64,000 nt of DNA from Rebecca billardiae RCC1528 (Eukaryota; Protista; Haptophyta): positions 124,001 to 188,000 of the forward strand of contig OZ251247.1 in the NCBI GenBank assembly GCA_965240325.2. Direction: 5' to 3'. The first letter of the stretch is position 1; each line of letters starts with the position of its first letter. The notes beneath the pieces were generated by a model, which was given only the letters and a program-made list of their open reading frames with translations, was not told the origin of the DNA and did not search any database. This document shows positions 2,036 through 60,760 of this stretch, one piece after another. The position numbers and the translations under genes were made by a program.

Positions 2036-3550
2036 TCACTGATGCAACGCGGAGCAGTTGGACGCCGGCAGAGGGTGCTGCGTCAGCATACGCGAGCACG
2101 CCGCCTCGACGCGCGCGGGCGTGTCAATCCGCTGGGTGGGCTCGTCTTGCTCGGCCACGCTCATGCCGAGGCCGAGCGCGGCCGAGCGCTCACCGCACGC
2201 GTGCACGCTGCCTTCCGCACTCACAAACAGCGAGTGGGAGTCGCCCATGGCACATCGCACCACACAGGAAGGGCCGAGGGCAGCCACGCGCGACGGGGCG
2301 CCATGCCCACTCTCTCCAGCCCCCAGCCCCAGCTGGCCGTAGCTGTTGTCCCCAAACGTGTGCACGCTGCCGTCAGCACCCAGCACCGCGCTGCTCTCTG
2401 AGCCTGCACACGCGCGCACGATGCGCACACCCGCGAGGGAGTCGATCCGCCTCGGCGTGAGCTGCTCGCGCGTGTCTGCGTGCCCGTGCGAGCCATTCGC
2501 ACCATACCCAAACGAGTGCACCGCCCCGTCGCTGTCCACCACCAGGCTGTGCGCAGCGCCCGCGCTCACGTGCACGGCGCGCACGCCCGCGAGCGCCTCG
2601 ATGCGCCTCGGCGTGTGCTGAACCTCCTGGTCGCCGTGGCCGAGACGGCCAAACTGGGCACGGCCGCACGAGTAGACGGCGCCGTGCGCAGAGAGGAGCA
2701 GCGTGTGATCACCGCCCGCGGCCACGCCGCCCACGCGCACGCCGTCCAGCGCCTCGATGCGCGTCGGCTCCCACCGCTGCTTGGTGTCGCCGTGGCCGAG
2801 CTGGCCGCAGTTGTTGCCGCCCCAGCTGTACGCGCACCCAGCGGCGGTGAGCGCGAGGCTGTGGCGCGCGCCGGCCGAGATGCCCACGACACAAGCAGCA
2901 CGTAGGCGATCGATCAGCGCGAAGTACCGCCGCTCCTCCGTGTCCCTCAGCCCGAGCTGGCCGGAGCCGTTGCAGCCGCAGCCGTACACGGCGCCGGCGT
3001 CGCTCAGCGCGAGCAGGTGGTCCCAGCCAGCGGCCACAGCGGCTACGCGCACCGCGGAGAGCGAGGGCACGCGCGTCGGCACGCGCACTGCCGGCAAACC
3101 CGAGTGGCCGATGGCCACGTGCGCGCGGTACCCGCCCATCCGCCGCCCGTACTTGTCCCGCACCTTCTCCTCGCCGCACGTGTGCAGCCCGCCCTCCGCG
3201 TCCACAAACGCGCTGAAGCCGTTGCCGGCGGCCACGGGAGGCGAGTGCGCGCGTGCGAGCACGAGCACGCGTTCACGCGCGAAGAGCTCCTCCGCCCAGC
3301 TGCGCACGCCCGCCGGCAGCGACGCCGGCAGCGCGCGCGCGTGCCCCCGCGCGCGCGCGCGCTCGCGCAGCGCGCGCTCGACCGCCGAGCACCCGCCGGG
3401 CGGCGCGGCGTGGAAGAGGCGCGCGGTGGCGTTCAGGCTGGCGAGGTTACCGGGCGGCAGGAGCGAGATGATGCGGTCGAGCACCTCTGACGGCAGGTCG
3501 ACGAGCGCGCGCGTCGGTTGCGCGGCGCCGCCCATCTCGTCGGTGGCCAT
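2036..3550 (-). CDS. F-box + RCC1-repeat protein FR1 (altered C-terminus)
   Basis: LVDLPSEVLDRIISLLP F-box motif followed by RCC1 repeats (AGxxH / YxxGxNxxGQLG). Intronless. A small deletion near the end replaces the usual ...WRARVC*. Confidence 0.9.
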   Translation of the reverse strand: MATDEMGGAAQPTRALVDLPSEVLDRIISLLPPGNLASLNATARLFHAAPPGGCSAVERALRERARARGHARALPASLPAGVRSWAEELFARERVLVLARAHSPPVAAGNGFSAFVDAEGGLHTCGEEKVRDKYGRRMGGYRAHVAIGHSGLPAVRVPTRVPSLSAVRVAAVAAGWDHLLALSDAGAVYGCGCNGSGQLGLRDTEERRYFALIDRLRAACVVGISAGARHSLALTAAGCAYSWGGNNCGQLGHGDTKQRWEPTRIEALDGVRVGGVAAGGDHTLLLSAHGAVYSCGRAQFGRLGHGDQEVQHTPRRIEALAGVRAVHVSAGAAHSLVVDSDGAVHSFGYGANGSHGHADTREQLTPRRIDSLAGVRIVRACAGSESSAVLGADGSVHTFGDNSYGQLGLGAGESGHGAPSRVAALGPSCVVRCAMGDSHSLFVSAEGSVHACGERSAALGLGMSVAEQDEPTQRIDTPARVEAACSRMLTQHPLPASNCSALHQ

Positions 3551-3913
3551 CCCGCCGTTCGCGCTGCTCGCGCCCGGGGCCGATGATTGTGTGCAACACG
3601 GACGTCAGTACCCCCATACGTCACGGTTGGCGACAGTTGCCAGTAGTTGCTGATGCTGTCGGGTCAGGTTGGTTGTCTCACTGATGTGTGCGCAGCCGCT
3701 GCTGCTGCCACTTTCGGCTCTGCTTAGTCTCGCTACCACCGCTATCACTCATCACTGCGCATCGTCTGAAGTCGTCAGTCCGACTACGCCGACTCCGAAC
3801 CGTACAGTACTGCTCAGTAGCTACGCGGAGCAGTCTGCTGATGGCAACTTGGGCCCTTGAGTCTCAGACTCTCAGCAGTCTGGACGCCGGCAGACTGGCG
3901 GCAGAGGCGCGTG

Positions 3914-5389
3914 TCAGCGCACACGCACACGCAACGCCGTCTCGATGAACGCGGGCGTGGCTATCCGCCGGGTGGGCTCGCCTGGCTCGGCCATGCACAG
4001 TCCGAGGCCGAGCGCAGCCGAGCGCTTGCCGCACGCGTACACGTTGCCGTCCGCACTCACAAACAGCGAGTGGGAGTGGCCCATGGCACAGTGCTCCACG
4101 CGGGCTTGGGCGAGGGCATCCACTGACACGCGTGCCGGAGGTGCGTGGGCCGTCTCTCCGCGCCCCAGCCCGAGCTGGCCGTCCTCGTTGTTCCCAAACG
4201 CGTGCACGCTGCCGTTCGCGCCCACCACCGCGCTGCCGTCCAGGCCAGCGCACGAGCGCACGGCGTGCGATGCAGCGAGCGCCTTGACGCGTTTGGGCGT
4301 GAGCCTATCGCGCCGGCCACCGTGCCCGAGCCTCCCATCGAGCCCACGCCCGAACGAGTGCACCCCACCCTGCGCGCCCACCACCAGGCTGTGCGCGTAG
4401 CCTGCGCTCACGTGCACGGCGCGCACGCCCGCGAGCGCCTCGATGCGCCTCGGCGTGTGCTGATCCTGCCCGTCGCCGTGGCCGAGCCGGCCAGAAGAGC
4501 CCCGGCCGCACGAGTAGACGGCGCCTTGTGCAGAGAGCAGTAGCGTGTGGTCAGCGCCCACCGCCACGCCGCCTACGCGCACGCCGTCCAGCGCCTCGAT
4601 GCGCGTCGGCTCCGACCGCCGCTCCGTGTCGCCGTGGCCGAGCTGGCCGTTAACGTTCCAGCCCCAGCTGTACGCGCACCCAGCGGCGCTGAGCGCGAGG
4701 CTGTGCTTGCTTCCAGCGGCAATGCCCACCACCACGACGTCGGCCAGCGCCGCAACCAGGATGAACTCGCGCCGGACCTTGCCGCCGCCCAGCCCGAGCT
4801 GGCCGTGGACGTTCATGCCGCAGCCGTACACGGCGCCGGCCTCGCTCAGCGCGAGCAGGTGGTGCTCGCCAGCGGCCACTGCGCGCACGCGCACCGCACA
4901 GAGCGAGGCCACGCGGGTCGGCACGCGCACTGCCTGCGCGCCCGAGTGGCCGATAGCCACGTGCGCTCGAAACGGGCGACGCCCGTGCTGGTCCCGCCCC
5001 ACCTCCGCCTCCTCGCCGCACGTGTGCAGCCCGCCCTCCGCGTCCACAAACGCGCTGAAGCCGTAGCCGGCCGCGACCGGAGGCGAGTGCGCGTGCGCGA
5101 GCTCGAGCACGCCCTCGCGCAGGAGCAGCTCCGCCGTCCAACTGCGCACGCCCGAGGGCAGCGATGCCGGCAGCGCGCGCTCGTGCCCGCGCGCGCGCGC
5201 GCGCTCGCGCAGCGCGCGCTCGACCGGCGAGCAGCCGCCGGGCGGCGCGGCGTGGAAGAGGCGCGCGGTGGCGTTCAGGCTGGCGAGGTCGGGCAGCGGC
5301 AGGGGCGAGATGATGCGTCCGAGCACGTCTGGCGGCAGGTCGTCGAGCGCGAGGCGCGGCGTGCGCGCCCGATGTGCCGTGCTGGCCAT
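3914..5389 (-). CDS. F-box + RCC1-repeat protein FR2
   Basis: Start placed at MASTAH (ATG 5389) by homology to paralogs. F-box LDDLPPDVLGRII followed by RCC1 repeats. Confidence 0.9.
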   Translation of the reverse strand: MASTAHRARTPRLALDDLPPDVLGRIISPLPLPDLASLNATARLFHAAPPGGCSPVERALRERARARGHERALPASLPSGVRSWTAELLLREGVLELAHAHSPPVAAGYGFSAFVDAEGGLHTCGEEAEVGRDQHGRRPFRAHVAIGHSGAQAVRVPTRVASLCAVRVRAVAAGEHHLLALSEAGAVYGCGMNVHGQLGLGGGKVRREFILVAALADVVVVGIAAGSKHSLALSAAGCAYSWGWNVNGQLGHGDTERRSEPTRIEALDGVRVGGVAVGADHTLLLSAQGAVYSCGRGSSGRLGHGDGQDQHTPRRIEALAGVRAVHVSAGYAHSLVVGAQGGVHSFGRGLDGRLGHGGRRDRLTPKRVKALAASHAVRSCAGLDGSAVVGANGSVHAFGNNEDGQLGLGRGETAHAPPARVSVDALAQARVEHCAMGHSHSLFVSADGNVYACGKRSAALGLGLCMAEPGEPTRRIATPAFIETALRVRVR

Positions 5390-5628: not shown

Positions 5629-7101
5629 TCAGCAGACACGCGCGCGCCACGCCGTCTCGACGCACGCGGGCGTGGGGATCGGTGGGCCGGACTCGTCTTG
5701 CTCAATGCCATCATACTCGCTCAGCCCGAGGCCGAGCGCAGCCGAGCGCATGCCGCAGGCGTACACGCTGCCGTCCGCACTCACAAACAGCGCGTGGGAG
5801 TCGCCCATGGCGCAGCGCACCACACGGAGAAGAGCCAGGGCAGCCACGCGCGACGGGACGGCATGCCTCGTCTCTTCGGACCCCAGCCCGAGCACGCCGT
5901 CGTCGTTGCCCCCGAACGTGTGCACGCTGCCGTCCGCGCCCAGCACCGCGCTGCTGAGTGCGCCAGCGCACGCGCGCACGATGCGCACAGCGGCGAGGGC
6001 GTCAATCCGCCTCGGCGTGGGCTGCTCGGGCGTGGCTGCGTGCCCGAGCGAGCCATCCTCACCATACCCAAACGAGTGCACCGCTCCCTCGCTGTCCACC
6101 ACCAGGCTGTGCGCACCGCCCGCGCTCACGTGCACGGCGCGCACGCCCGCGAGCGCCTCGATGCGCTGCGGCGTGAGCCGAGGCTCCTCGTCGCCGTGGC
6201 CGAGCTGGCCGCCGTTGCCGCGGCTGCACGAGTAGACGATGCCGCACACCGATAGAAGCAGCGTGTGCACATGCCCAGCCACCACTCCGCCCACGCGCAC
6301 GCCGTCCAGCGCCTCGATGCGCGTCGGCTGCCGCCGCTCCTGCGTGTCTCCCAGCCCCAGCTGGCCGTACCGGTTGAGGCCCCAGCTGTACGCACGGCCG
6401 GCTGCACTGAGCGCGCAGCTGTGAGCGCTTCCAGCGGTGATCGCCACAACCACGACACCGAGCAGCGCCGCGACAGGCTCGCACTCGCGCCGCTCCTCCT
6501 TGTCCCCCAGCCCCAGCTGGCCGTACTCGTTCTTGCCGCAGCCGTACACGGCGCCGGCCTCGCTCAGCGCGAGCAGGTGCTCATAGCCAGCGGCCACCGC
6601 GACCACGCGCGTAGCAGCGAGCGAGGCGACGTGCGTCGGCACGCGCACTGCCGACAAGCCCGAATGGCTGATGGCCGCGTGCGCTCGATACGTCCAACTG
6701 TCCTCGTCCTCCTCCCCCTCCTCACCGCACGCGTGCAGCCCGCCCTCCGCGTCCACAAACGCGCTGAAGCGACCGCCGCACACGACCGGGGATGCGTGCG
6801 CGCGTGCGAGCTCGATCACGCGCTCGCGCGCGAACAGCTCCTCCGTCCACGTGCGCACGTCGGAGGGCAGCGACGCCAGCAGCGCGCGCTCGTGCGCGCG
6901 CGCGCGCGCGCGCTCGCGCAGCGCGCGCTCGACCGCCGAGCACCCGCCGGGCGGCGCGGCGTGGAAGAGGCGCGCGGTGGCGTTCAGGCTGGCGAGGTCG
7001 TGTGGCGGCAGGAGCGAGACGACGCGGTCGAGCACCTCTGACGGCAGGTCGACGAGCGCGCGCGTCGGTTGCGCGCTGCCGCCCATCTCGTCGGTGGCCA
7101 T
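5629..7101 (-). CDS. F-box + RCC1-repeat protein FR3
   Basis: MATDEMGG start at 7101; F-box and RCC1 repeats; ends ETAWRARVC*. Confidence 0.9.
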   Translation of the reverse strand: MATDEMGGSAQPTRALVDLPSEVLDRVVSLLPPHDLASLNATARLFHAAPPGGCSAVERALRERARARAHERALLASLPSDVRTWTEELFARERVIELARAHASPVVCGGRFSAFVDAEGGLHACGEEGEEDEDSWTYRAHAAISHSGLSAVRVPTHVASLAATRVVAVAAGYEHLLALSEAGAVYGCGKNEYGQLGLGDKEERRECEPVAALLGVVVVAITAGSAHSCALSAAGRAYSWGLNRYGQLGLGDTQERRQPTRIEALDGVRVGGVVAGHVHTLLLSVCGIVYSCSRGNGGQLGHGDEEPRLTPQRIEALAGVRAVHVSAGGAHSLVVDSEGAVHSFGYGEDGSLGHAATPEQPTPRRIDALAAVRIVRACAGALSSAVLGADGSVHTFGGNDDGVLGLGSEETRHAVPSRVAALALLRVVRCAMGDSHALFVSADGSVYACGMRSAALGLGLSEYDGIEQDESGPPIPTPACVETAWRARVC

Positions 7102-7324
7102 CGTGCGGCGCCGATGATCGTACCCGCATACGGGCGTCAATCTCGCCTGCCTGAGCTGTGTGCGTCTCTTATTCTTAGTAAACTGCTGTACCGATTACCG
7201 CGCCGCGCCTCTGCTGTTCCCCACTTCCCAAAGCGCTGCAACGAAATAAACGTAGTAAGCATCAGGAGCGATTGAGACCCAGCTGCTCGGGCTGCTGGCC
7301 CTCGCCCCTCGGCGGCAGGCGGCG

Positions 7325-8806
7325 TCAGCAGACGCGCGCACGCCACGCCGCCTCGACGCACGTGGGCGTGCCAATCCGCTGGGTGGGCTCGTCTTGCTCG
7401 GCAGCGCTCATGCCGAGGCCCAGCGCAGCCGAGCGCTTGCCGCACGCGTACACGCTGCCGTCCGCACTCACAAACAGCGAGTGGGCATCGCCCATGGCAC
7501 AGTGCACCACACAGGAAGGGGCGAGGGCACGCACGCGCGTGGGAATCTTGGTAGCCGCTTGCCCGCGCAGCCCGAGCATGCCGGCCCTGTTGTCCCCGAA
7601 CGTGTGCACGCTGCCGTCTGCGCCCAGCACCGCGCTGCTGCATGCGCCAGCGCATGCGCGCACGGCGCGCACGCCGGTGAGGGCGTCAATCCGCCTCGGC
7701 GTGGGCTGCTGGAGCGGCTGGAACGTGGCTCCATACCCGAGCCCGCCAACCTCACCATACCCGAACGAGTACACCGCCCCCTCGCTGTCCACCACCAGGC
7801 TGTGCTCACAGCACGCGCTCACGTGCACGGCGCGCACGCGCGCAAGCGCCTCGATGCGCCTCGGCGTGCGCTGATCCCGCTGGTCGCCGTGGCCGAGACG
7901 GCCAAACTGGCCATCGCCGCACGAGAAGACGGCGCCGTGCGCCGAGAGCAGCAGCGTGTGAGCGCCTCCCGCAGCCACCCCGCCCACGCGCACGCCGTCC
8001 AGCGCCGCGATGCGCGTCGGCTCACACCGGCCCTTCCTGTCGCCGTGGCCGAGCTGGCCGTCACTGTTGTAGCCCCAGCTGTACGCGCACCCAGCGGCGC
8101 TGAGCGCGAGGCTGTGGTAGCCGCCAGCGGAGATGCACACCACCACGACGTCGGCCAGCGCCGCGACCGGAACGAACTCGCGCCGCATCTTGCCACCGCC
8201 CAGACCGAGCTGGCCGCACACGTTCTTGCCGCAGCCGTACACAGCGCCGACCTCGCTCAGCGCGAGCAGGTGGCCAATGCCAGCGGCCACGGAGCACACG
8301 CGCACCGCGCTGAGGGAGGCGACGTGCGTCGGCACGCGCACTGCCTGCATGTCCGAGTGGCCAATGGCCACGTGCGCTCGATACTCGCCCGTCAGACGTC
8401 GGAACTCGTCCAGCACCGCCTCCTCGCCGCACGTGTGCAGCCCGCCCACCGCGTCCACAAACGCGCTGAAGTTGTCGATGCCGTCTGCGCCGGCCGCCAC
8501 GGGAGGCGAGTGCGAGCATGCGAGCTCGAGGAGGCGATCACGCAACAACAGCTCCTCCGTCCACGTGCGCACGCCCGAAGGCAGCGACGCCGGCAGCGTG
8601 CGCTCGTGCCCGCGCGCGCGCGCGCGCTCGCGCAGCGCGCGCTCGACCGGCGAGCGGCCGCCGGGCGGCGCGGCGTGGAAGAGGCGCGCGGTGGCGTTCA
8701 GGCTGGCGAGGTCGCGCGACGGCAAGCATAGGATGATGCGGGCGAGCACTTCCGGGGGCAGGTCGTCGAGCGCGAGGGGCGGCGTGCGCGTCCGTGCCGT
8801 GGCCAT
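7325..8806 (-). CDS. F-box + RCC1-repeat protein FR4
   Basis: 493-aa ORF, MATARTRTPP type, with F-box and RCC1 repeats. Confidence 0.9.
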   Translation of the reverse strand: MATARTRTPPLALDDLPPEVLARIILCLPSRDLASLNATARLFHAAPPGGRSPVERALRERARARGHERTLPASLPSGVRTWTEELLLRDRLLELACSHSPPVAAGADGIDNFSAFVDAVGGLHTCGEEAVLDEFRRLTGEYRAHVAIGHSDMQAVRVPTHVASLSAVRVCSVAAGIGHLLALSEVGAVYGCGKNVCGQLGLGGGKMRREFVPVAALADVVVVCISAGGYHSLALSAAGCAYSWGYNSDGQLGHGDRKGRCEPTRIAALDGVRVGGVAAGGAHTLLLSAHGAVFSCGDGQFGRLGHGDQRDQRTPRRIEALARVRAVHVSACCEHSLVVDSEGAVYSFGYGEVGGLGYGATFQPLQQPTPRRIDALTGVRAVRACAGACSSAVLGADGSVHTFGDNRAGMLGLRGQAATKIPTRVRALAPSCVVHCAMGDAHSLFVSADGSVYACGKRSAALGLGMSAAEQDEPTQRIGTPTCVEAAWRARVC

Positions 8807-9685
8807 CGAGCCGAGCGCGAGAGAAGACGCGAGGGGAAGGGCCGAGCGGAGGGCGGTGCGCGGCGGAGGACAGAGCCTGGACAGTCCGACAGTGGCAAAC
8901 CGTCTCCGATCGAGTCACAGCGAGGGTGCTGACGAGCTGCGTCAGCTCCTGGCCACTGCCAGCAAGGTTGGTACTGTCACTTGTCAGTTCCTGCTGACGC
9001 CGGCTGACTACGCGCATTGATGCCGCGCATATCACTGCTACTGCGCTCGTCTGCGACTTGTGAGCAGTGTCCGGCGCAGTTGATCACTGGCGGGCCGGTC
9101 GTGAACACCGTTGGTAACACGGGGACGGCGTCCGCGGCAGAGCAGACCGGCCGCGCCTTAGGAGTCGCCACTCGGAGTCAGTGACGACGGACGACCCGGA
9201 TGATGAATGACGCCTGCATAGTGCATGGCTGGCTCTGGCCGACACCAGCTCGGCTGCTCACGGCACGCAGTCGGCACTGCGGCCGCGACTGCGACGGCCG
9301 CCGGGCAGCGCTGCTCAGAGCGCACGTACACGCCGCACTGCGCATCGGACTCGGCAGTCCGGACTCGGCGCCTGCAGGCAGGACTCAGCCGCGCGGCGCA
9401 CGTGCCGTCGCGCCGGCTAGCCCACCGCCCCCCCTCCCACCCGCCCCCCGCCGGCAGGGCCCAGGGCGGCACGCGCGGCTTTCGTGCCGCAGCCCTCACC
9501 GCCCGGAGACGCGCGCTGTTGCCCCCTCCGCTGCCCGTGCCGTGCGCACCCGTGCCGCGCCCAGTGCGCCTGGCATGCAGCAGCACCTCCCCTCCTCCCC
9601 CCCCCGCACACCTCCACACTCCCCGCCGCAGGCAGGCCCGCAGCTGCTCCGGCTGCCTGCCCTCGCCCCTCGGAGGCAGGCGGAG
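8807..9685. repeat. Conserved intergenic unit of the array (representative copy): upstream region of the left gene plus 3' flank of the right gene
   Basis: Homologous spacers, with varying promoter-proximal parts, recur at 11147-12240, 13705-14475, 15934-17652, 19117-19990, 21455-22324, 23786-24879, 26326-27223, 35123-36019, 37466-39389 and 40839-42233. Repeat period is about 2.2-2.6 kb where there is no insertion. Confidence 0.85.
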
Positions 9686-11146
9686 TCAGCAGACGCGCGC
9701 ACGCCACGCCGTCTCGACGCACGTGGGCGTGTCAATCCACCAGGTGGGCTCGTCTTGCTCGGCCTCGCTCATGCCGAGGCCGAGCGCAGCCGAGCGCTTG
9801 CCGCACGAGTGCACGCTGCCGTCCGCACTCACAAACAGCGAGTGGGAGTGGCCCATGGCACAGTGCACCACGCGCACGTGGGCGAGGGCACTTACGCGCG
9901 TGGGCAGCGGCGATTCGCCAAGGCCATCGTGCCCCAGCTGGCTGTCCTTGTTGTCCCCGAACGTGTGCACACTGCCGTCCGCGCCCAGCACCGCGCTGCT
10001 GAGTGCGCCAGCACGGGCGCTGACCGCGCGCACGCCCGCCAAGGCCTCTATGCGCTTGGGCGACAGAGACCACGCCCGGTCACCATGGCAGGGGCAGCCT
10101 CCGTACCCCTCTCCAAACCAGCGCACGCCACCCTCCGCGTCCACCACCAGGCTTTGCATGCGGCCCGCGCTCACGTGCACGGCGCGCACGCCCGCTAGCG
10201 CCTCGATGCGCCTCGGCGTGTGCTGATCCTGATAGTTGCCGTGGCCGAGCTGGCCTTGGAAGCCGTAACCGCACGAGTAGACGGCGCCATGCGCAGAGAG
10301 CAGTAGCGTGTGGTCACCACCCGCGGCCACGCCACCCACGCGCACGCCGTCCAGCGCCTCGATGCGCCTCGGCGTGAGCTGAGCCTGCCTGTCGCAGTGG
10401 CCAAGACGGCCGCAGCCGTTGGCGCCCCAGCTGTACGCGCAGCCCGCGGCGGTGAGCGCGAGGCTGTGGTAGCCGCCCGCGGCGATCGCGACGACGAGCT
10501 CACTCGCGGGTAGCTTGACGAGCGCGAATGAGCGCCGCTCCTCCGAGTCCCCCAGCCCCAGCTGGCCGAAGTCGTTGCCGCCGCAGCCGTACACCGTCCC
10601 AGCATCGCTCAGCGCGAGCAGGTGCCAGCTGCCAGCGGCCACGGCGACCACGCGCACACCGCTGAGGGAGGCGACGTGCGTCGGCACACGCACGGCCGGC
10701 GCATCGTGGTGGCCGGCTGCAAAGTGCGCTCGATACTCCCCCGTTCCGTTCCCGCGCTCGTCCAGCACCTCCTCCTCGCCGCACGTGTGCAGCCCGCCCT
10801 CCGCGTCCACAAACGCGCTGAAACGGAGGCCGGCCGCCACGGGAGATGCGTGCGCGCATGCGAGCGCGAGCACACGCTCGCGCACGATCAGCTCCTCCGT
10901 CCACGTGCGCACGCCCGAGGGCAGCGCCGCCGGCAGCGTGCGCTCGTGCCCCCGCGCGCGTGCACGCTCGCGCAGCGCGCGCTCGACCGCCGAGCGCCCG
11001 CCGGGCGGCGCGGCGTGGAAGACGCGCGCGGTGGCGTTCAGGCTGGCGAGATCGCGCAGCCGCAGGAGTGACGTGATGCGGTCGAGCACCTCTGACGGCA
11101 GGTCGTCGAACCCGGGGCGCGGTGCGTGCGTCCGTGCCGTGGCCAT
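9686..11146 (-). CDS. F-box + RCC1-repeat protein FR5
   Basis: MATARTHAPRPGFDDLPSEVLDRI start at 11146; RCC1 repeats; near-identical to FR10. Confidence 0.9.
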   Translation of the reverse strand: MATARTHAPRPGFDDLPSEVLDRITSLLRLRDLASLNATARVFHAAPPGGRSAVERALRERARARGHERTLPAALPSGVRTWTEELIVRERVLALACAHASPVAAGLRFSAFVDAEGGLHTCGEEEVLDERGNGTGEYRAHFAAGHHDAPAVRVPTHVASLSGVRVVAVAAGSWHLLALSDAGTVYGCGGNDFGQLGLGDSEERRSFALVKLPASELVVAIAAGGYHSLALTAAGCAYSWGANGCGRLGHCDRQAQLTPRRIEALDGVRVGGVAAGGDHTLLLSAHGAVYSCGYGFQGQLGHGNYQDQHTPRRIEALAGVRAVHVSAGRMQSLVVDAEGGVRWFGEGYGGCPCHGDRAWSLSPKRIEALAGVRAVSARAGALSSAVLGADGSVHTFGDNKDSQLGHDGLGESPLPTRVSALAHVRVVHCAMGHSHSLFVSADGSVHSCGKRSAALGLGMSEAEQDEPTWWIDTPTCVETAWRARVC

Positions 11147-12240
11147 CGAGTCGAGCGCGAGAGAGGAGGAGGGCTGCCGATGCGTTGAGGTGAGGAACCG
11201 GCAGGGGGGTGGACAGGGCAAGGGCACCCGGCCTGTCTGGTACTCTGCTCCGGACTGCGCCGCCATCGTTACTCGGCGGGCACGGCCCTCCAGTCCTGGC
11301 CTGGCTGGCACGTACCCAGCCGCACGCCTTGGCGTCCGGACTCCTGGCCTCCTCCGCCGCCAAGGGCGGTCCTGGCCACTGTCAGCATCCTGCTGACGCC
11401 AGCTGACGACTACGCGCATTGACGACGATATGAACCGCATATCAAGTGCTGCTGCTATATACTGTCGTCGCCGTCGCCTGTGACTTATTGTATATAAGGC
11501 AGCGAGTCCGGCCGCCGGCGGCGCGGTCATTCTCGCGGTCGCGCGGATCCGCCGCACTCGGAGTGGCCACCGCGTGTCCGTGACTCAGCGCGGGCCGTCC
11601 CGTGTGAATTCGCCGGCGGCCTACTACGCACCGTTGGTAACACGGGGACGGCGTCGGCGGCACGGAGCAGACAGGCCGCCGCCTGAACTGCTCGTCGCCA
11701 CTGATATGTCTGAATCTGATGAGCCCGGACTCCCGGATGACTGTGACGCGACGCCTGCATAGCCATAGTGCATAATGGCTGCGGCCGTCTGCGGACCGAT
11801 ACCCGCCGTAGGCTGCTCACGGCACGCAATCGGCACTGCGGCCGCGACTCCGGCGGCCGCCGGGCAACGCTGCTCAGAGTGCACGTACACGCCGCACTGC
11901 GCATCGGACTCGGCAGTCCGGACTCGGCGCCTGCAGGCAGGACTCAGCCGCGCGGCGCACGTGCCGTCGCGCCGGCTAGCCCATCGCCCCCCCTCCCCCC
12001 CGCCCCCCGCCGGCAGGGCCCAGGGCGGCACGCGCGGCTTTCGTGCCGCAGCCCTCACCACCCGGAGACGCGCGCTGTTGCCCCCTCCGCTGCCCGTGCC
12101 GTGCGCACCCGTGCCGCGCCCAGTGCGCCCGGCATGCAGCAGCACCTCCCCCCTCCCCCCGCGCACCCCCACACTCCCCGCTGCAGGCAGGCGCGCAGTG
12201 GCTCCGGCTGCCGGCCCTCGCCCCTCGGAGGCAGGCGGCG

Positions 12241-13704: not shown

Positions 13705-14475
13705 CGAGCCGAGCGCGAGACAAGACGAGGGGCCGAGCGGAGGGCGGTGCGCTGCGGAGGACAGGGCCTGGACAGTCCGACAGTGGCAAACCGTCTCCAC
13801 AGCGAGGGTGCTGAGCTGCGCGGTTGATCACTGGCGGGCCGGCCGTGAACGCCTACTACCGTTGGTAACACGGGGACGGCGTCGCCGGCACGGAGCAGAC
13901 AGGCCGCCGCCTGAACTCGCGTCGCCACTGATGTCTGATGTGGATCCGTGATGTGAGCCGACCCGGATCGGAAGTGATGACGACGCCTGCATACTCTGCT
14001 GCATAGCAGTGCATAATGGCTGCGGCTCTAGCCGATACCCGCTAGGCTGCTCACGGCACGCAATCGGCACTGCGGCCGCGACTCCGGCGGCCGCCGGGCA
14101 GCGCTGCTCAGAGTGCACGTACACGCCGCACTGCGCATCGGACTCGGCAGTCCGGACTCGGCGTCTGCAGGCAGCGCTCAGCCGCGCGGCGCACGTGCCG
14201 TCGCGCCGGCTAGCCCACCGCCCCCCCTCCCACCCGCCCCCCGCCGGCAGGGCCCAGGGCGGCACGCGCGGCTTTCGTGCCGCAGCCCTCACCGCCCGGA
14301 GACGCGCGCTGTTGCCCCCTCCGCGGCCCGTGCCGTGCGCACCCGTGCCGCGCCCAGTGCGCCCGGCGTGCAGCGGCACCCCCCCTCCTCCCCCCGCGCA
14401 CCCCCACACTCCCCGCTGCAGGCAGGCGCGCAGCGGCTCCGGCTGCCGGCCCTCGCCCCTCGGAGGCAGGCGGCG

Positions 14476-31122: not shown

Positions 31123-31154
<32 letters not shown>

Positions 31155-31224: not shown

Positions 31225-31230
31225 GCCGCG

Positions 31231-43697: not shown

Positions 43698-43800
43698 CGA
43701 GTCGAGCGCGAGAGAGGAGGAGGGCTGCCGATGAGTTGAGGTGAGGAACCGGCAGGAGGGTGGAGGACTGGTGGACAGGGCAAGACAAGGGCACCCGGCC

Positions 43801-49499: not shown

Positions 49500-49542
<43 letters not shown>

Positions 49543-49975: not shown

Positions 49976-50006
<31 letters not shown>

Positions 50007-51927
50007 GCGGCGCGGATCGGGCGGCGGCGGCGGCGGACGCGGCGGCGGGGCGCACGCCGCCGCCGCTGCCCTCCACCGCCGTCTTCCGCGGCCTCGCCGA
50101 CCTGCCCCCGTGGCTGCTCCCGCCGCCCCCGGACTCGATGGCCGCACAGCCGGACCTCGACCCTGCCTCGCACGTGGCCACCGCCTACAAGGCCGCGGCG
50201 GGCGTGGCGGCGGGCGGCGGCGGCGGCGGCGGTGGCGGTGGCGGTGGCGGTGGCGGTGGCGGTACTGGTGGCCGGGGCGGTGCCGACGGCGGTGGCGAGG
50301 GCGGCGGCGAGACCGTCTCCGCGCCCTCCGTCAACGGCTGGCGCAGCGCCGCCGCCGCCGCCGCCGTGCTCTGCGACCCGCCCCGCGAGGGCGACGTCGC
50401 TCTGAGCGCCTATCCCACCGGCTACCTGCAGCTCTACGCGCAAGGTGGGTACCGTGCGGGTAATGCGGGTACTGCGGGTACGGTGGGGAGCGGGGTGAGG
50501 GTGGGCCTCCCACGCGGGAGGCGCGTGTGTGCGTGTGCGTGTGCGTGTGCGTGTGCACAGGGGGGCGGAGGCGGAGGCGCTGTGCCGCCCCCTGCGCCCC
50601 GCCCCGCACCGCACACACACACACCCTAACCCTAACCCAAACCCTAACCCCGCCCTGCACACGCACGCACACGCGCGCACACACGCGCGCACAGGCGCGT
50701 GGGGCTCGGTGTGCGGCCACTACTTCTGGGACTCGCCCCGCGCCGCCGACATCGCGTGCAAGCAGCTGGGCTACGCGTACGGCGCCGCCATCCACACCGA
50801 GCCCACGCCCGCGGCGGTGGCGCTGCCCCGGGCGGCGTATTGGGGGGCGGGGGCGGGGGCGGGGGCGGGGGGGGCGCAGCCGCACGGGGCGGCGGCGTGG
50901 TCGGGCGAGTGGTACGCCCCGCTCACGCCCGGCCTCGGCGCCGCGCTCCCCCCCGGCGTGCGCTGGGGCGGGCCCCTCAGCCGCGCGCTCGGCATAGCGC
51001 CCCTCCAGCCGGCGGATTTTGAGCCGCCGGCGGCAGCGGCGGCGGAGGCGCGCGCGCTCGACGCGGCGGGGGCGCGCGGCGTGGAGGCGGTGTACTCGCT
51101 GCCCGTCTCGGGTGCGCGCGCGCGCGCGCGCGCGAGCACGCGCGGTCGGTGCCGTGCGCCCGCGAGCCCGCCGCCAGGCGGCGGCGCCGGCTGGGCCGCC
51201 GCCGCTGCGGGCCGGCAGCGGCGGCGGCAGCGGCGGCGGCAGCGGCCGTGCGCGTGCCGCGGCTGGCGCGCGCCCCGCTCGGCCCCGGACCGACCGCCCG
51301 GACCGACCGCCCCCCTTCGCACCCCGCGCCCCTCGCCGCCCCCAAACGCTACGCTCGCCGTGACGCCTGCCGTGCCGCTGACCGTTCCGCTGCCCGTTCC
51401 GCTGACCGTTACGCTTGCCGTTACGCTTGCCGTTACGTTGACCGTTACGCTCTCCACCTCAGGCGCGCGCGGGTTTGAGTGCCACGGGGAGGAGCCGGAC
51501 CTGCTGGCGTGCAGGGCGCACCACTCGGTGCACGGCACCGCGCTCACGCGGCTGTGCGCGCACAGGCTCGACCAGGTGCGCGCGCGCGCGCACGCCGTCC
51601 CTCCCGCGCGGCTCTGGGCGCGCGTGCGCGCCCGCCGTCGCTGCGCGCGGCGCGCGCGGCGGCGCGCGCTCCCCCCTGCCCCGAACGCGCGCTGAGCGCG
51701 GCGGCGGCGCGGCGGCGGTGCGCGCGCGATGGCAGATTGTGACGTGCGGCGGCGGCGCGCCGCATGACCCGCTCTGCGGCTCGCGCCCGCGCGCCGCGCC
51801 CTCCGTCGCGCTCGAGCACGCGCGTGCGCTGCTGTCCGCGTGGAACGCAACCGAAGCCGCCGCGCGCGCCTCGGGCGCGGCGAGCGCGCGGCAGCGGCAG
51901 CGGCGGCGGGGGCGGCGGCGGGCGTGA
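48692..51927 (+). CDS. Gly/Ala-rich single-pass membrane protein with an SRCR domain
   Basis: TM segment LCLLCCALALLALLLLAVAM. Spliced SRCR motifs GYLQLY..GAWGSVC..W..AADIACKQLGY..FECHGEEPDLLAC..CAHRLDQIVTC. Introns 50445-50694, 51112-51462 and 51576-51735. Confidence 0.75.
50623..50650 (+). repeat. Short interstitial telomere-like (CCCTAA)n tract in an intron
   Basis: ACCCTAACCCTAACCCAAACCCTAACCC. Confidence 0.6.
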
Positions 51928-52343: not shown

Positions 52344-55082
52344 ATGGGCGCGGACGGCGGCGGGAAGGGCGGCTCGGGCAAGACGGGCGGGCGCATGCTC
52401 GGCTCCGCCGTGGCCGGCGCCTCCGAGCTGATGGTGCGCCGCCGCCGCCACCGCACGCCGCCGCCGCCACCGCGCAAAGCGCGGCGCGCACTCGCCCGCG
52501 CGACGGGCACACCGCGCGCGCGCACCGCTGCGCGCGCGCGCGTGGCCACGCGCGCGCGCGCGCGCGCTGAGGTACGTGCCTCCAACCGACCGTCCCCCGC
52601 CCCCGCATCGCGACGCGCGCGCACACCGCGCCCGCCCCGCGTGCCGCGGCGGCGCCGCCGCACGCCGCGCGACCGCGCGATCGCGCACACCCGCGCGCGA
52701 CCGCCCGGACTGGCTCGTCTGCGCGGCTCCGGCGTCGGCGCCCCGCACACACACCCCGCCCCCCCCCCCCCCCCCCGCCAGTTCTTCCACCCCGTCGACA
52801 CCATCGCCAAGCGGCTGATGACCAACACCGCCCCCATCGCCACCTCCGCGGACATGTCCGCCGTGCTGTTCAGGGAGGCGGCGGGGGCGGGCTGGGCGGA
52901 GCGCGGGCGCAGCCTGTTCCCCGGGCTGGGCTGGGCGGCGGGGTACAAGGTGCGCCGCGGGCTGGGCGCGCGCGTGCTGCGGTGGGGCGGGGTGTGCACC
53001 GCCCCGCCTACCCCTGCGCTACCCCCCATACCCCTCATACCCCCAATACCCGTACTGCGTGCTACCCCCATGCGGTGACCCCTATGTGTATGTACTGTTA
53101 CTACCCGCGTACAGGTGCTGCAGCGCGTGTACAAGTTCGGGGGGCAGCCGTTCGTGAAGGACGCGCTGCAGGCGAACGTCGGAGGTGCGCGCGCGCCGCG
53201 CCCTCTGCGCCGCCAGCCAGCACCGCGCGCGCGCGCAGCCGCCGACCGCGGTTGCGCGCGCGCCCACTGCGGCACCGCGCCCGCCGCGGCACCAGGCGGC
53301 TTCGAGGCGGTGTTCGGCAAGCGGCAGGCGAAGGGGTGGATGCACGCCACCGCCGGCTCCATCATCGGCGTGGGCGAGGTGCGCCGCGCCCCGCCCCGCC
53401 CAGCCCGACCCACGCCGCCCGCCGCCGCCCGCCGCCGCCCGCCGCCGCGCTCGGCGCCGCGGCCGTTGCTCAGCCGGCCGCGCCCGCGCCCGCCCCCGCC
53501 GCCGCCCGTCCGGCCGCCGCCTGCCGCGCGCGCCCTCCCCGCCGCGCCGCGCGCAGGTGGCGCTGCTCCCCCTGGACGTGCTCAAGATCCGCGCGCAGAC
53601 CAACCCCGAGTCGCTGAAGGGCAAGGGCGTCGTCACGCTCTTCTGGACCGAAGGTGCGCAGCCCTGGGTGCGCCCCTGGGTGCACTGTGTGTGTGTGTGT
53701 GTGTAACAGACCGACGGTGCGCAGCCCTGGGTGCACCCCTGGGTGTGGAACCACCCTGTGTGTGTGTGGAGCACTGTGTGCACACAGTGCGCGTGCGTGT
53801 GGAGCACTGTGTACTGTGTGTGTGTGTGGAGCAAGGGGGTGTGTGCCACACGTGCGCGTGCGTGTGTGTGTGTGCGGAGGACGGGTGGGTGAAGGGCGCG
53901 AGCCACCACGGCCGCCGCCGCCGGCTCGCTGCGCCACCGCCGCCGAGGGGCCCAGCGCGGCAGTGCGCGCGCAAGGCGCGCGGCGCGCGGCGCGCCGACC
54001 GACCGCCAACCGACGCCACCGCTTCTCCCTCGCCGCCCCCCCCCCCCCCGCAGGGGCGGGGCTGTACCGTGGCGCGGGCTGGACGGCGCTGCGCAACGCG
54101 CCCGGCTCGTTCGCGCTGTTCGGCGGCAGCGCGCTCGTGAAGGACGGGCTGTACGGCCTGCAGGACTACAACCAGGTGCGCACATATAGGCACTTACACA
54201 CGCACTCACATAGGCACACACGGCTGGGTGCGGGGAGGTGGATACCCATCGCGGGTATATGTGGGTATATGCGCGCGAGTGCATGGGCACACACCGCCCG
54301 CGGGCGCGCGTGTGTGCCGATGGCCGCCCTCGCCCCCGCGCGTGCGTGCCCTGCGGCAGCCTGCGTGACGCCCGCCGCAGACGCGCGGGGGCGGAGGGCG
54401 CGCGCGCGCTGCGGCCGCGCGCCCTCGCACGCCCGCCCCGCGGCCCGGCCTGCCGCCCTGCCGTCATCCTGCGAGCCCAGCCGCGGCACGCTCTCACCCC
54501 CCGCTCCCCGCCCCTCCCCCCACCCCCCGCAGGCCACCTTCCTGCAGACGACCGTCGCCTCGCTGGTGGGCGCCGCCGCCTCCATCACCGTCGCCGCTCC
54601 GATGGACGTGATCAAGACGCGCATCCAGAGCCGCTCGCACGACGACCCAAAGTCGGTGAGAGCGGAGGGGGGGGGGGGGGGTCGGCGCGCGGCGTGGGCG
54701 TGAGCGTGGGCGTGCGTGTGCGTGTGTGTGTGTGTGTGCATGCGCGTGCAGGGTGGGCGTGGGGTGCGGGCGCGGGGGGGGGGGGGGGGGGGGGGGGGGG
54801 CTGCGCAGGGCGGCTCTGCGCGCCCCCTGCCTGCGCGCGCGCCGCCCTCCACCGCGGCCGCCGCCCAGCTCACACGGGCCCACGCCCCCGCGCGCACGCC
54901 CAACCCCGCGCGCCGGCGAGCAGGGCGTGCGGCTGGTGGCCGAGCTGCTCGCCACCGAGGGCCCCACCGCCTTCTTCAAGGGCCTCGCGCCCAAGCTGCT
55001 CACCGTCGGCCCGAAGCTCGTCTTCTCGTTCACGGTCGCGCAGTACCTCATCGCCATCACCGACAGGATGGCAGGCGCCTGA
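52344..55082 (+). CDS. GGC1: Mitochondrial GTP/GDP carrier (yeast Ggc1/Yhm1-like), multi-exon
   Basis: Spliced FHPVDTIAKRLM, LFPGLGWAAGYKVLQRVYKFGGQPF, LPLDVLKIRAQTNPES, RNAPGSFALFGG, APMDVIKTRIQ and AFFKGLAPKLLTVGPKLVFSF. Three carrier signatures and close resemblance to yeast Ggc1. Confidence 0.9.
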
Positions 55083-57192: not shown

Positions 57193-58791
57193 ATGATGGC
57201 CACCGACGCGTGCGGGGCGACGCCGCTCGGGTTCGACGACCTGCCGCCGGAGGTGCTCGACCGCATCACGTTACTCCTGCGGCTGCGCGATCTCGCCAGC
57301 CTGAACGCCACCGCGCGCCTCTTCCACGCCGCGCCGCCCGGCGGCTGCTCGCCGGTCGAGCTCGCGCTACGCGAGCGCGCGCGTGCGCGGGGGCACGAGA
57401 GCGCGCTGCCGGCGTCGCTACCGGAGGGCGTGCGCACGTGGGCCGGGGAGCTGCTCGTCCGCGAGCGCGTGCTCGAGCTCGCATGCGCGCACGCATCTCC
57501 CGCGGCGGCCGGCGACGGCTTCAGCGCGTTTGTGGACGCGGATGGCGGGCTGCACACGTGCGGCGAGGAGAAGGCGGAGGACGAGGACGGGGAGCCGACG
57601 TATCGAGCTCACGTGGCTTCGGACCACTCGGGCATGCCCGCCGTACGCGTGCCGACGCACGTCGCCTCCCTCAGCGCGGTGAGCGTGTGCTCCGTGGCCG
57701 CCGGCTACAACTACCTGCTCGCGCTGAGCGAGGCCGGCGATGTGTACGGCTGCGGCAACAACGACGAGGGCCAGCTCGGGCTGGGGGATACGGAGGACCG
57801 GCACTCGTTCGCCCTCGCCGAGCTACCCGCGAGCGAGCCCGTCGTCGCCATCTCGGCCGGCCACTGCCACAGCCTCGCGCTCAGCGCCGCGGGCTGCGCG
57901 TACAGCTGGGGCCACAACTACTACGGCCAGCTCGGCCAAGGCGACAGGGATGACCGGTGGGAGCCGGCGCTCATCGAGGCGCTGGACGGCGTGCGCGTGG
58001 GCGGGATGGCTGCAGGCGCTGAGCACACGCTGCTCATCTCGACCACCGGCGCCGTTTACTCGTGCGGCCGGGGCCAGTTCGGCTGTCCCGGCCACGGCGA
58101 CGGGCAGGCTCAGCGCACGCCGAGGCGCGTCGAGGCGCTCGCGGGCGTGCGCGCCGTGCACGTGAGCGCGGGCAGGGGCCACAGCCTGGTGGTGGACGCA
58201 GAGGGTGGCGTGCTCTCCTTCGGGAGTGGACGCCATATGAAGCTCGGGCACGGCGACCAGCAGGACCAGCACGCGCCGAGGCGCGTCGAGGCGCTCGCTG
58301 GTGTGCGCGCCGTGCGCGCGTGCGCGGGCGTGCACACCAGCGCGGTGCTGGGCGCGGACGGCAGCGTGCACACGTTCGGGGACAACGGGGACGGCCAGCT
58401 CGGGCTGGGGCACGGAGAGTCGGCCGAAGATGCCGCAGATGGCGACGCCGCCTTCGCCGCGGCGCACGACCTCCCGCCCCAGGACTACCACTCGCTGCTC
58501 GAGAGCGTGCAGCGGCGCCGGGCGGTCGAGTTCTCCGCCAACGCGCCGTCCAAAGTGGGCGCGCTCGCGCACGCGCGCGTGGTGCGCTGCGCCATGGGCC
58601 GCTCCCACGCGCTGTTCGTGAGCTCGGAGGGCAGCGTGTACGCGTGCGGCAAGGAGTCGGCGGCCCTCGGCCTCGGCATGGGCACGCCCGCGCCACCCGC
58701 GCGGGTCCGGGTGATCGACACGCCCGAGTGCGTCGAGACGGCGTGGTCCGCGCGTCTGCTGGCGTCGCCGTCGGGCGCGCCCGGGGACTGA
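57193..58791 (+). CDS. F-box + RCC1-repeat protein FR18 (divergent; loop insertion)
   Basis: 532-aa ORF; F-box FDDLPPEVLDRI; RCC1 repeats; roughly 36-aa insertion; distinct C-terminus. Confidence 0.9.
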   Translation: MMATDACGATPLGFDDLPPEVLDRITLLLRLRDLASLNATARLFHAAPPGGCSPVELALRERARARGHESALPASLPEGVRTWAGELLVRERVLELACAHASPAAAGDGFSAFVDADGGLHTCGEEKAEDEDGEPTYRAHVASDHSGMPAVRVPTHVASLSAVSVCSVAAGYNYLLALSEAGDVYGCGNNDEGQLGLGDTEDRHSFALAELPASEPVVAISAGHCHSLALSAAGCAYSWGHNYYGQLGQGDRDDRWEPALIEALDGVRVGGMAAGAEHTLLISTTGAVYSCGRGQFGCPGHGDGQAQRTPRRVEALAGVRAVHVSAGRGHSLVVDAEGGVLSFGSGRHMKLGHGDQQDQHAPRRVEALAGVRAVRACAGVHTSAVLGADGSVHTFGDNGDGQLGLGHGESAEDAADGDAAFAAAHDLPPQDYHSLLESVQRRRAVEFSANAPSKVGALAHARVVRCAMGRSHALFVSSEGSVYACGKESAALGLGMGTPAPPARVRVIDTPECVETAWSARLLASPSGAPGD

Positions 58792-59293
58792 GGGCTAGTT
58801 TGAGGCTGGCGTGAACGGCGCCGCTGCTGGCGCAATGCTGATCGTCGAAATATCGCGCGCGGGGGGGAGAGAGAGAGCGCGCGCGCGCGCGCGCGCGACT
58901 ATGGCGGACCGACCGACGGTTGGCGAGGGGCCGCGAGGGTGGCCGTTCTGCACCGGTCGTGAGACACCGCAACTCACGCAAGCGGGCAAGCAGATACGAT
59001 GCATGACGACCGTAAAGTACCGGCGGCGCAGCCATCGGCGACGGCTTCATGGGCGGTGACAGTTGGCGGGCGTCGATCTCGCCTGCCTGAGCTGTGTGCG
59101 TCTCTTATTCTTAGTAAACTGTAACACTGTAGCACGGCCCTTGACTGTAGTCAGGGTACTGTGTGCACGTTAATCATAGTAAACTGTAGTATCTGTAGCA
59201 AAGCTTCAAGCACGGCGTTGGTCAAGCAGTGTATCCGCCGGGCGGGCGGCCGCGCCGACCGCTCCTTTCCAGGGGGGCGGGCGGGAGCGATCG

Positions 59294-60760
59294 ATGGCCA
59301 GCACGGCGCAGGCGCACGCGCGCCGCCTCGCGCTCGACGACCTGCCGCGCGAGATGCTCGACCGCATCATCTCACTCCTGCCGCCGCGTGACCTCGCCAG
59401 CCTGAACGCCACCGCGCGCCTCTTCCACGCCGCGCCGCCCGGCGGGTGCTCGCCGGTCGAGCGCGCGCTGCGCGAGCGCGCGCGAGCGCGTGGGCACGAG
59501 CGCGCGCTGCCGGCGTCGCTGCTTTCGGGCGTGCGCACGTGGACGGAGGAGCTGCTTGTTCGCGAGCGCGTACTCGAGCTCGCATGCGCGCACGCATCCC
59601 CGGTTTCGGCAGGCGAGGGCTTCAGCGCATTTGTGGACGCGGAGGGCGGGCTGCACACGTGCGGCGAGGAGGAGGAGGAGGACGAGGACACAGGCGAGCC
59701 GACGGGCGAGTTCCGAGTGCACGAGGCCATCGGCCACACGGACGTGCATGTAGTGCGTGTGCCGACGCACGTCGTCTCCCTCAGTGCGGTGCGCGTGGTC
59801 GCGGTGGCCGCTGGCAGCTGCCACCTGCTCGCGCTGAGCGAGGCAGGCGCTGTGTACGGCTGCGGCGACAACGGCTGGGGCCAGCTCGGGCTGGGCGACA
59901 CGGAGGAGCGGCGCGCATTCGTTTTTGTCGAGCTACCCGTGTGTGAGCCCGCCGTCGGCATCTCGGCCGGCAACTACCACAGCCTGGCGCTCAGCGCCGC
60001 TGGGTGCGCGTACAGCTGGGGCTACAACGACTTCGGCCAGCTCGGCCACGGCGACAAGAAGGCGCGATGGGAGCCGACGCGCATCGAGGCGCTGGACGGC
60101 GTGCGCGTGGGCGGCGTGGCCGCGGGCCGTGAGCACACGCTGCTGCTCTCTGCACACGGCGCCGTGTACTCGTGCGGCGATGGCTTCTCTGGCAAGCTCG
60201 GCCACGGCGACCGGCAGGATCAGCACACGCCGCAGCGCATCGAGGCGCTTGCAGCAGTGCGCGCCGTGCACGTGAGCGCGGGCCACATGCACAGCCTGGT
60301 GGTGGACGCAGACGGGCTGGTCTACTCGTTCGGATTCCATGGGCAAGGCCAGCTCGGCCACGGTGCCCTTGGGTTCCGTGCCACGCCCCGGCGCATCGAG
60401 GCGCCCGCTGATGTGCGCGCCGTGCGCGCGTGCGCTGGCTTTCGCAGCAGCGCGGTGCTGGGCGCGGACGGCAGCGTGCACGCGTTCGGGGACAATGAGC
60501 ACGGCCAGCTCGGGCGGCGCGGGGATGCGGCTCCCGAGACCCCCGCACGAGTGAGCGTCCTCGCACAAGCTCACGTGGTGCGCTGTGCCATCGGCGCCTC
60601 CCACTCGCTGTTTGTGAGTGCTGACGGCCGCGTGTACGCGTGCGGCAAGCGCTCGGCTGCGCTCGGCCTCGGCATGAGCGCGGCCGAGCGAGCCGAGCCC
60701 ACACAGCGGGTTGCCACGCCCACGTACGTCGAGACGGCGTGGCGTGCGCTTGTCTGCTGA
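59294..60760 (+). CDS. F-box + RCC1-repeat protein FR19
   Basis: 488-aa ORF with a MASTA-type N-terminus shared with FR2. Confidence 0.9.
   Translation: MASTAQAHARRLALDDLPREMLDRIISLLPPRDLASLNATARLFHAAPPGGCSPVERALRERARARGHERALPASLLSGVRTWTEELLVRERVLELACAHASPVSAGEGFSAFVDAEGGLHTCGEEEEEDEDTGEPTGEFRVHEAIGHTDVHVVRVPTHVVSLSAVRVVAVAAGSCHLLALSEAGAVYGCGDNGWGQLGLGDTEERRAFVFVELPVCEPAVGISAGNYHSLALSAAGCAYSWGYNDFGQLGHGDKKARWEPTRIEALDGVRVGGVAAGREHTLLLSAHGAVYSCGDGFSGKLGHGDRQDQHTPQRIEALAAVRAVHVSAGHMHSLVVDADGLVYSFGFHGQGQLGHGALGFRATPRRIEAPADVRAVRACAGFRSSAVLGADGSVHAFGDNEHGQLGRRGDAAPETPARVSVLAQAHVVRCAIGASHSLFVSADGRVYACGKRSAALGLGMSAAERAEPTQRVATPTYVETAWRALVC

Follow-up and report, generated by a model that had tools for sequence, protein, structure and literature searches.

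Tandem F-box/RCC1 genes of the haptophyte Rebecca billardiae: a recombining family of probable ubiquitin-ligase substrate receptors with hypervariable propeller loops

Fast-evolving tandem F-box families are already known from nematodes and plants. Passages of the published accounts report lineage-specific tandem expansion of these families together with positive selection in the substrate-binding domain (Thomas 2006, PMC1524861, as cited in PMC8120010; PMC3030570), and a passage of PMC8120010 mentions a possible link between the SCF (Skp1-Cul1-F-box) ligases and antimicrobial immunity. The present study concerns an array of 18 F-box/RCC1 genes in Rebecca billardiae RCC1528 (Haptophyta), located on contig OZ251247.1 of assembly GCA_965240325.2, positions 124,001 to 188,000 of the forward strand. 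This stretch of 64,000 nucleotides (nt) was analysed as a whole and is referred to as the window, with all positions counted from its first letter. The array has tandem copies, a fairly constant F-box and a selected binding domain in common with the nematode and plant expansions. It differs from them in the binding domain itself, which is FTH, FBA, Kelch or LRR in those families and a seven-bladed RCC1-like propeller here. It is also unlike them in having two variable loops per blade, predicted to share one face, a haptophyte host and a scaffold that is kept through dense exchange of sequence between copies. The RCC1 propeller as a variable scaffold, the loop-by-loop regularity, the algal host and the mosaic exchange are new elements, and no published description of a hypervariable F-box/RCC1 family was found in the literature searched.

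The domain order of the array proteins, an F-box followed by RCC1, is the same as that of vertebrate FBXO24 and yeast Saf1. To our knowledge, both of these are single genes without a hypervariable face. The linker module behind the F-box sets the array apart from FBXO24 and Saf1 as part of a family of its own. With the N-terminal module, 900 cluster representatives out of 1.84 billion are matched at E <= 1e-3, of which 264 reach E <= 1e-10. In overall plan, the proteins resemble Fbw7, in which an F-box is likewise followed by a helical linker and then a propeller. The best structural match of the propeller is UVR8, whose GWRHT and GWx interface residues correspond to the variable positions of the array. 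UVR8 has no F-box, unlike the array proteins, and it possesses a conserved GWRHT tryptophan triad. This triad is not conserved in the array because those positions are hypervariable, and tryptophan occurs there sporadically.

Two further groups of proteins are comparable in their organization. The S-locus F-box (SLF) proteins of the Solanaceae, which act in collaborative non-self recognition, are encoded by linked F-box paralogs, each of which recognizes a subset of polymorphic targets for degradation. Their binding domain differs from that of the array, and no linked target gene was seen in the window. Lamprey VLRs, the LRRs of plant NLRs and TRIM5-type factors are like the array in that a constant scaffold carries exposed, aromatic-rich hypervariable positions that are reshuffled by conversion. 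Their fold and effector arm are different, and the array shows no sign of somatic assembly.

The reading favored here, with moderate confidence and on the basis of sequence, is that the array belongs to a large family of probable substrate receptors of SCF ubiquitin ligases, which has been amplified in tandem, recombines, and is present in the window only in part. The F-box would dock onto Skp1/Cul1, while the variable propeller face would bind protein ligands, and the bound ligands would become ubiquitylated. These ligands may themselves be diverse or fast-evolving, being either proteins of pathogens or viruses or polymorphic proteins of the host.

The genes of the array are intact. The first-pass annotation of this DNA had counted 18 intact paralogs with conserved blade cores, and a fuzzy six-frame motif search of the window, together with a check of the open reading frames (ORFs), returned the same number. 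The FSAFVDAEGGLHTCGEE-type motif gave exactly 18 matches and was accompanied by the other blade cores quoted in that annotation. Every match (18 of 18) lies inside an uninterrupted ORF with a conserved MATART-like start. The ORFs are intronless and encode 481-577 amino acids, with 16 on the minus strand and 2 on the plus strand. The guanine plus cytosine (GC) content of the 64-kb window is 72% overall and 68-80% per 2 kb. By arithmetic from base composition, the chance that a random frame of 485 codons stays open at 72% GC is approximately 3e-4 per copy; the 18 open frames are therefore not a product of chance, and the genes have been maintained. The copy named c06 (12241-13704, minus strand; 487 residues), which was used for the structure model, has a coding-like GC content of 0.75/0.57/0.88 at the three codon positions. 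This pattern of the F-box genes is absent from all other open frames of the window.

The differences between the copies are concentrated at particular loop positions. Comparisons were made on 17 distinct copies; c10 (22325-23785, minus strand; 486 residues) is a near-exact duplicate of c05 (9686-11146, minus strand; 486 residues). All 18 proteins align unambiguously because the loops are of fixed length and have invariant neighbors. Nucleotide identity between copies ranges from 76 to 91%, with c05 and c10 near-identical. Variation is focused at two places in each blade, namely the xx of AGxxH and the x and xx of Gx(N/G)xxG. The 29 core loop positions contain a mean of 7.6 different residues per column across the 17 copies; the remaining 315 columns of the propeller average 2.3, and 125 of them do not vary at all. 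The hypervariability of the x positions in AGxxH and GxNxxG, as described in the first-pass annotation, is thus upheld. The 17 GxNxx strings listed there correspond one for one with the alignment, in which the eighteenth copy, c10, duplicates c05, and the length-variable acidic loop that it placed after CGEE is also present. Small in-frame deletions lie within the variable loops of c12 (27224-28675, minus strand; 483 residues) and of c15 (39390-40838, minus strand; 482 residues), that of c15 being a one-codon deletion in an AGxxH loop.

The composition of the variable positions is distinctive. Relative to the scaffold, they are enriched in aspartate (3.6-fold), tyrosine (5.1-fold), tryptophan (5.4-fold), asparagine (3.6-fold) and phenylalanine (2.2-fold), and they are depleted in valine, leucine, proline and threonine. 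A composition rich in aspartate, tyrosine, tryptophan, asparagine and phenylalanine is typical of protein-binding hot spots. With regard to the origin of the variation, adenine-specific templated mutagenesis was considered and rejected, as the differences between variable codons fall on each of the three codon positions and involve all four bases. In a search for the hallmarks of a diversity-generating retroelement, no reverse transcriptase domain was present in the ORFs scanned.

Four approaches to the measurement of selection were used because the copies recombine. The 35 motif sites on which several of them are based were defined by motif and not by variability, and were placed by hand. Nei-Gojobori counting gave a ratio of nonsynonymous to synonymous change (dN/dS, or omega) of 1.5 over the motif sites and 0.58 elsewhere. 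The value of 1.5 is a floor, since the motif sites are near saturation, with a proportion of nonsynonymous differences (pN) of 0.51. The site models M0, M1a and M2a were fitted in our own implementation with separate nucleotide trees for nine segments of 48-66 codons, which is a crude correction for recombination. The comparison of M2a with M1a gave a likelihood-ratio statistic (LRT) of 266 (p ~1e-58), and the omega classes of M2a were 0.09 on 64% of sites, 1 on 28% and 4.9 on 8%. A posterior above 0.95 was reached by 24 sites, 16 of which are motif positions. The LRT falls to 47 once the 35 motif sites are masked, and seven sites (26, 128, 302, 304, 368, 409 and 416) are still selected. In this mixture model, two positions within the F-box helices (columns 18 and 26, with the same residue numbers in c06) also score as selected, which could reflect a fit to different Skp1 paralogs, or noise.

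The third approach was a 28 x 28 rate grid in which the synonymous rate was left free for each site class. For the non-motif sites this yielded an omega of 0.31; for the motif class it yielded 1.8, which differs from omega = 1 with an LRT of 14.5 at one degree of freedom. Single-site tests on the grid are weak at saturated sites, and three loop sites were scored as “negative” with a very high fitted synonymous rate; the pooled class test was therefore relied upon. A tree-free, one-step estimate from distinct codons in the same column gave an omega of approximately 1.7 in the loops and 0.5 elsewhere. In addition, codons were compared between copies that agree completely in DNA over the eight codons to either side; these pairs of copies are not independent of one another. 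The loop codons so matched comprised 135 amino-acid differences, 1 synonymous-only difference and 69 identical codons, against 152, 121 and 1639, respectively, at control sites. The loops evolve faster than neutral and the scaffold is under purifying selection, with the size of the excess depending on the method.

These values bear upon an explanation in terms of endogenous regulation or “genomic drift”. Under this proposal, SCF adaptors have expanded by birth and death, serving ordinary substrates or being redundant, and the loop variability results from weak constraint with occasional adaptation and without an immune role. Large polymorphic F-box families of plants are interpreted in this manner in PMC3030570, and the non-loop omega of 0.5-0.6 obtained by counting methods is fairly high. 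The proposal nevertheless appears unlikely. The loop omega is significantly above 1, and the 135:1 ratio of amino-acid to synonymous-only differences is hard to obtain from relaxation alone. The enrichment of aromatic and acidic residues and the open state of all 18 frames also speak against it.

Returning to the favored substrate-receptor reading, each protein consists of an N-terminal F-box, two linker helices and a seven-bladed RCC1-like propeller. The propeller is matched in Pfam by the RCC1-like domain families (PF25390 and PF00415), namely WD40_RLD (E 2.6e-77) and RCC1 (E 4e-69), with six RCC1 repeats. When the first 105 residues are searched, the Pfam F-box-like family (PF12937) matches 17 of 17 distinct copies at E <= 1, with a best score of 29.9 bits against a cut-off of 24.3, and PF00646 is matched by 8 copies. 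The LP motif and the hydrophobic core positions of the F-box are invariant across the copies. A family profile, A3, was built from the paralogs and 37 N-termini of relatives from public data. Nearly all of its matches in the PDB are F-box proteins solved with Skp1, with FBXO31 at the top (E 2.6e-5); further matches are Legionella AnkB, FBXW7, cyclin F, FBXO22, FBH1, FBXO3, Skp2 and FBXL5.

The AlphaFold2 model of c06, calculated with 53 sequences, has a predicted local distance difference test score (pLDDT) of 94.5 and a predicted template-modeling score (pTM) of 0.92. It contains three short helices that form the F-box, two longer linker helices and seven four-stranded blades. The closest solved fold to the propeller is UVR8, with a target TM-score of 0.9 and approximately 30% identity. 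This is followed by the RCC1-like domains (RLDs) of HERC2, HERC1 and RPGR, with TM-scores of 0.8-0.86, and then by RCC1. The first 105 residues were also modeled separately (pLDDT 87), and the best Foldseek matches of this model are Fbw7-Skp1, FBG3, FBXO3, Fbs1 and FBXO4, with E-values of 0.2-1.

It has to be considered whether the proteins are SCF adaptors at all. The N-terminal helices may instead be a structural cap or a site for another partner, and the propeller face a scaffold, inhibitor or sensor. Consistent with this, single-copy Pfam scores are mostly under the cut-off, the F-box-like match ends at position 33 of the 47 in the profile, and a profile made from the paralogs alone recovered no F-box chain from the PDB. 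The wider A3 profile argues the opposite through its almost exclusive match to solved F-box proteins. The invariance of the LP motif and hydrophobic core and the best fold match, which is the Fbw7 F-box plus linker, also oppose a non-SCF role, and such a role is rated as improbable.

The positions under selection are not spread evenly over the propeller. DSSP assignment on the model places AGxxH at the turn of strands 1 and 2 of the blade, and GxNxxGQLGxGDxxx on the long connection of strands 3 and 4. Given the antiparallel four-stranded topology, the 1-2 and 3-4 loops therefore share a face, with the 2-3 and 4-1 loops on the opposite one. There are 22 propeller sites with a posterior above 0.95, of which 9 are in loop 1-2 and 9 in loop 3-4; the remainder comprises 2 sites in loop 4-1 and 2 in strands, with none in loop 2-3. 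Loop 1-2 totals 21 residues across the propeller. If loops 1-2 and 3-4 are defined in an enlarged manner (147 of 375 residues), they hold 19 of the 22 selected sites (binomial p 7e-6), and 31 of 37 sites at a posterior above 0.5 (p 3e-8).

The alignment with UVR8 leads to the same placement. The first x of AGxxH aligns with W233, W285 and W337, and the x of GxN with W250 and W302, and with W198 by blade equivalence. In a published description of UVR8 (PMC7455749), W233/W285/W337 and W198/W250/W302 are the tryptophans of the dimer interface, and the buried ones form the ring W39/W92/W144/W196/W300/W352. The selected site 304, which is outside both motifs, aligns by our own count with UVR8 D107, the residue mutated in the interface mutants 6xzl and 6xzm. 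Strand topology and UVR8 homology together predict a single propeller face for the selected loop residues.

The copies are recombination mosaics. The nearest paralog of a given copy switches between successive 50-codon intervals. A permutation test for recombination similar to the pairwise homoplasy index (PHI) gave p 0.0005, and the minimum number of recombination events (Rmin) is 93. Of the site pairs separated by less than 30 nt, 34% are incompatible by the four-gamete criterion, and beyond 300 nt approximately 50% are. Identical tracts occur in copies that are 87-89% identical overall, of 319 nt between c12 and c14 (36020-37465, minus strand; 481 residues) and of 263 nt between c12 and c16 (42234-43697, minus strand; 487 residues), and these tracts include variable codons. 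Owing to this exchange of segments between copies, each gene combines loop variants in its own way on the common scaffold.

Larger duplications are also visible within the array. A three-gene block of 6.5 kb at 7280-13814 is repeated at 19946-26438, with its flanking genes 70-95% identical. The central 3 kb tract, at 9240-12235 and 21879-24874, is at least 98% identical (mostly 99-100%) and spans c05/c10 and both spacers. Such a near-identical tract inside an older duplication points to very recent conversion or duplication. A second block at 42234-46989 comprises c16 together with approximately 3.3 kb upstream of it and recurs at 27224-31235. The two versions are 89% identical in the gene and 93% identical in the flank, and they differ by an insertion or deletion of ~820 nt. 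The duplication junction at 31235 cuts through an F-box gene and leaves a 76-codon remnant. This is a truncated nineteenth copy (31236-31459, minus strand) that consists of the F-box only, within the first ~76 codons.

The 3′ ends of the genes differ in their conservation from the remainder. In the core copies, identity reaches 93-98% over the final ~55 codons and ~430 nt of downstream non-coding DNA, compared with 71-91% in the propeller and 82% at third codon positions. The conserved 3′ block is seen at the 3′ ends of c05-c15, for example at 11810-12400 on the minus strand. One possibility is that conversion homogenizes the flanks, with the diversity inside the genes being retained or brought in from a larger pool; the other is that the block is functional in itself.

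This form of exchange raises the question of an artefact, whereby conversion evens out the scaffold and old neutral differences persist in the loop codons that it skips. Dense recombination, the raised synonymous rate at loop codons and the 97% identity of the non-coding 3′ flank against 82% at third codon positions would all be in keeping with homogenization of this kind. Neutrality, however, predicts an omega of approximately 1, whereas 1.7-4.9 was observed, and it predicts many synonymous-only differences, of which there was 1 in 136. The conversion tracts carry loop codons too, as seen in c12/c14, and neutrality would not produce the enrichment of D, Y, W, N and F. An origin through homogenization alone is considered highly improbable.

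Several points weigh against the favored reading of a recombining family of SCF substrate receptors. When full-length proteins are searched, most copies score under the Pfam F-box-like cut-off, and the match covers profile positions 1-33 of 47 only. The Foldseek E-values of the N-terminal model are weak (0.2-4), as can be expected of a domain of this size. Recombination is dense enough that it can inflate tree-based selection tests. In the rate grid, the synonymous rate is approximately 1.8-fold higher at motif codons, and the conservative estimates of the loop omega are 1.5-1.8, compared with 0.3-0.6 elsewhere. The proposed sharing of one face is based on strand topology and UVR8 homology. 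Furthermore, a search for sequencing runs that could document transcription returned none, and no target, virus or defense gene was found linked to the array.

The first-pass annotation had proposed a constant Skp1-docking module combined with a variable binding surface that degrades diverse, possibly viral, targets. This proposal stands in part. The constant module is identified as a real F-box by Pfam, the PDB profile search and the fold search, while the DSSP loop counts and the UVR8 interface alignment place the variable positions on one predicted face. The selected sites are clustered and have a dN/dS above 1, and not scattered with a dN/dS at or below 1, an outcome that had been named beforehand as refuting. 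An antiviral role of the array is a guess and represents one hypothesis among several.

A more specific and tentative hypothesis, which we regard as possible and still doubtful, is that of a germline-encoded, recombination-shuffled intracellular immune repertoire. The propeller faces would recognize proteins of giant viruses or parasites, and these would be destroyed through SCF ubiquitylation. Fast-evolving F-box families were reportedly proposed by Thomas in 2006 to target foreign proteins. We know of no organism that uses receptors of an RCC1-type fold for immune recognition. If true, the repertoire would parallel NLR or TRIM5-type receptors, with a ubiquitin ligase as its effector and a fold that is new to this purpose. 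The recognition of viruses and parasites by haptophytes and marine algae is barely known, and such infections shape blooms and carbon flow. The F-box/RCC1 family offers concrete candidates for this recognition with an antibody-like variable face, and through it the RCC1 propeller would join the few scaffolds that have evolved into variable-recognition modules. With seven blades and two or three fixed-length variable loops on each, the propeller might also serve as a scaffold for binder engineering.

The same layout would be expected of an SLF-like system for self/non-self or mating recognition, or for toxin neutralization, in which linked paralogs degrade polymorphic partners of the same species. 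Tandem F-box paralogs, diversifying selection in the binding domain and exchange between copies are shared by both, and sexual cycles exist in haptophytes. On the other hand, no partner gene (RNase or toxin) was present among the ORFs scanned in the window. An S-RNase-like Pfam domain was also absent from the 20 other window ORFs, in a scan that may miss intron-bearing genes. An SLF-like role is given little weight.

The wider family to which the putative substrate receptors belong is represented in public data by relatives. The closest database match is just 53% identical, and the window's own proteins are therefore not in the collections searched. The relatives share the N-terminal module, in which the F-box is followed by the conserved linker VEEALRLRA...LP..E.SW...ERR. 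In groups of relatives with 50-65% identity among themselves, variability once more peaks at these loop positions of the propeller. ESM Atlas clusters that combine an F-box with RCC1 are mostly labeled Haptophyta, and the vertebrate FBXO24 cluster is among the nearest neighbors in ESM Atlas feature space. Two related metagenomic or Logan contigs carry single copies and not arrays. The closest public relative (L001) is a single copy on a Logan contig of ERR14847148, 5469 nt in length and 70% GC, which suggests that this sample contains a related high-GC alga. Among the haptophytes, Diacronema lutheri has a GC content of 73.25% and 45% single-exon genes (PMC8379373). The GC content and lack of introns seen here fit a Pavlovales haptophyte.

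The 16 minus-strand genes are arranged head to tail from 2036 to 43697, followed by a plus-strand pair. Intergenic spacers measure 223-1924 nt, with the exception of gaps of 4.7 kb and 13.5 kb. On the minus strand, the array begins with c01 (2036-3550; 504 residues), which has a variant C-terminus, and continues with c02 (3914-5389; 491 residues), c03 (5629-7101; 490 residues) and c04 (7325-8806; 493 residues). Beyond c05 and c06 lie c07 (14476-15933; 485 residues), c08 (17653-19116; 487 residues) and c09 (19991-21454; 487 residues), and c10 is followed by c11 (24880-26325; 481 residues). The longest protein is that of c13 (33389-35122, minus strand; 577 residues), in which the stop codon of the family is lost and ~93 extra C-terminal residues are added.

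The plus-strand pair consists of c17 (57193-58791; 532 residues) and c18 (59294-60760; 488 residues). The former has a variant C-terminus and a 37-residue insertion in the 3-4 loop of the last blade, encoded by 111 nt in frame at 58429-58539. A retained intron was ruled out for this segment; it is a true loop insertion, because no GT..AG boundaries fit.

Rfam and tRNA scans of the window gave no matches. The 20 other long ORFs of the window gave only a weak SRCR match, a mitochondrial-carrier match and a sub-threshold PsbM match in Pfam. Two of these lie in the 13 kb gap between c16 and c17, where the GC content reaches up to 80%. The weak SRCR match (E 4e-6) is in the open frame 50529-51695 and the mitochondrial-carrier repeat (E 3e-9) in the open frame 53654-54703, both on the plus strand. 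These two open frames are probably exons of intron-bearing genes.

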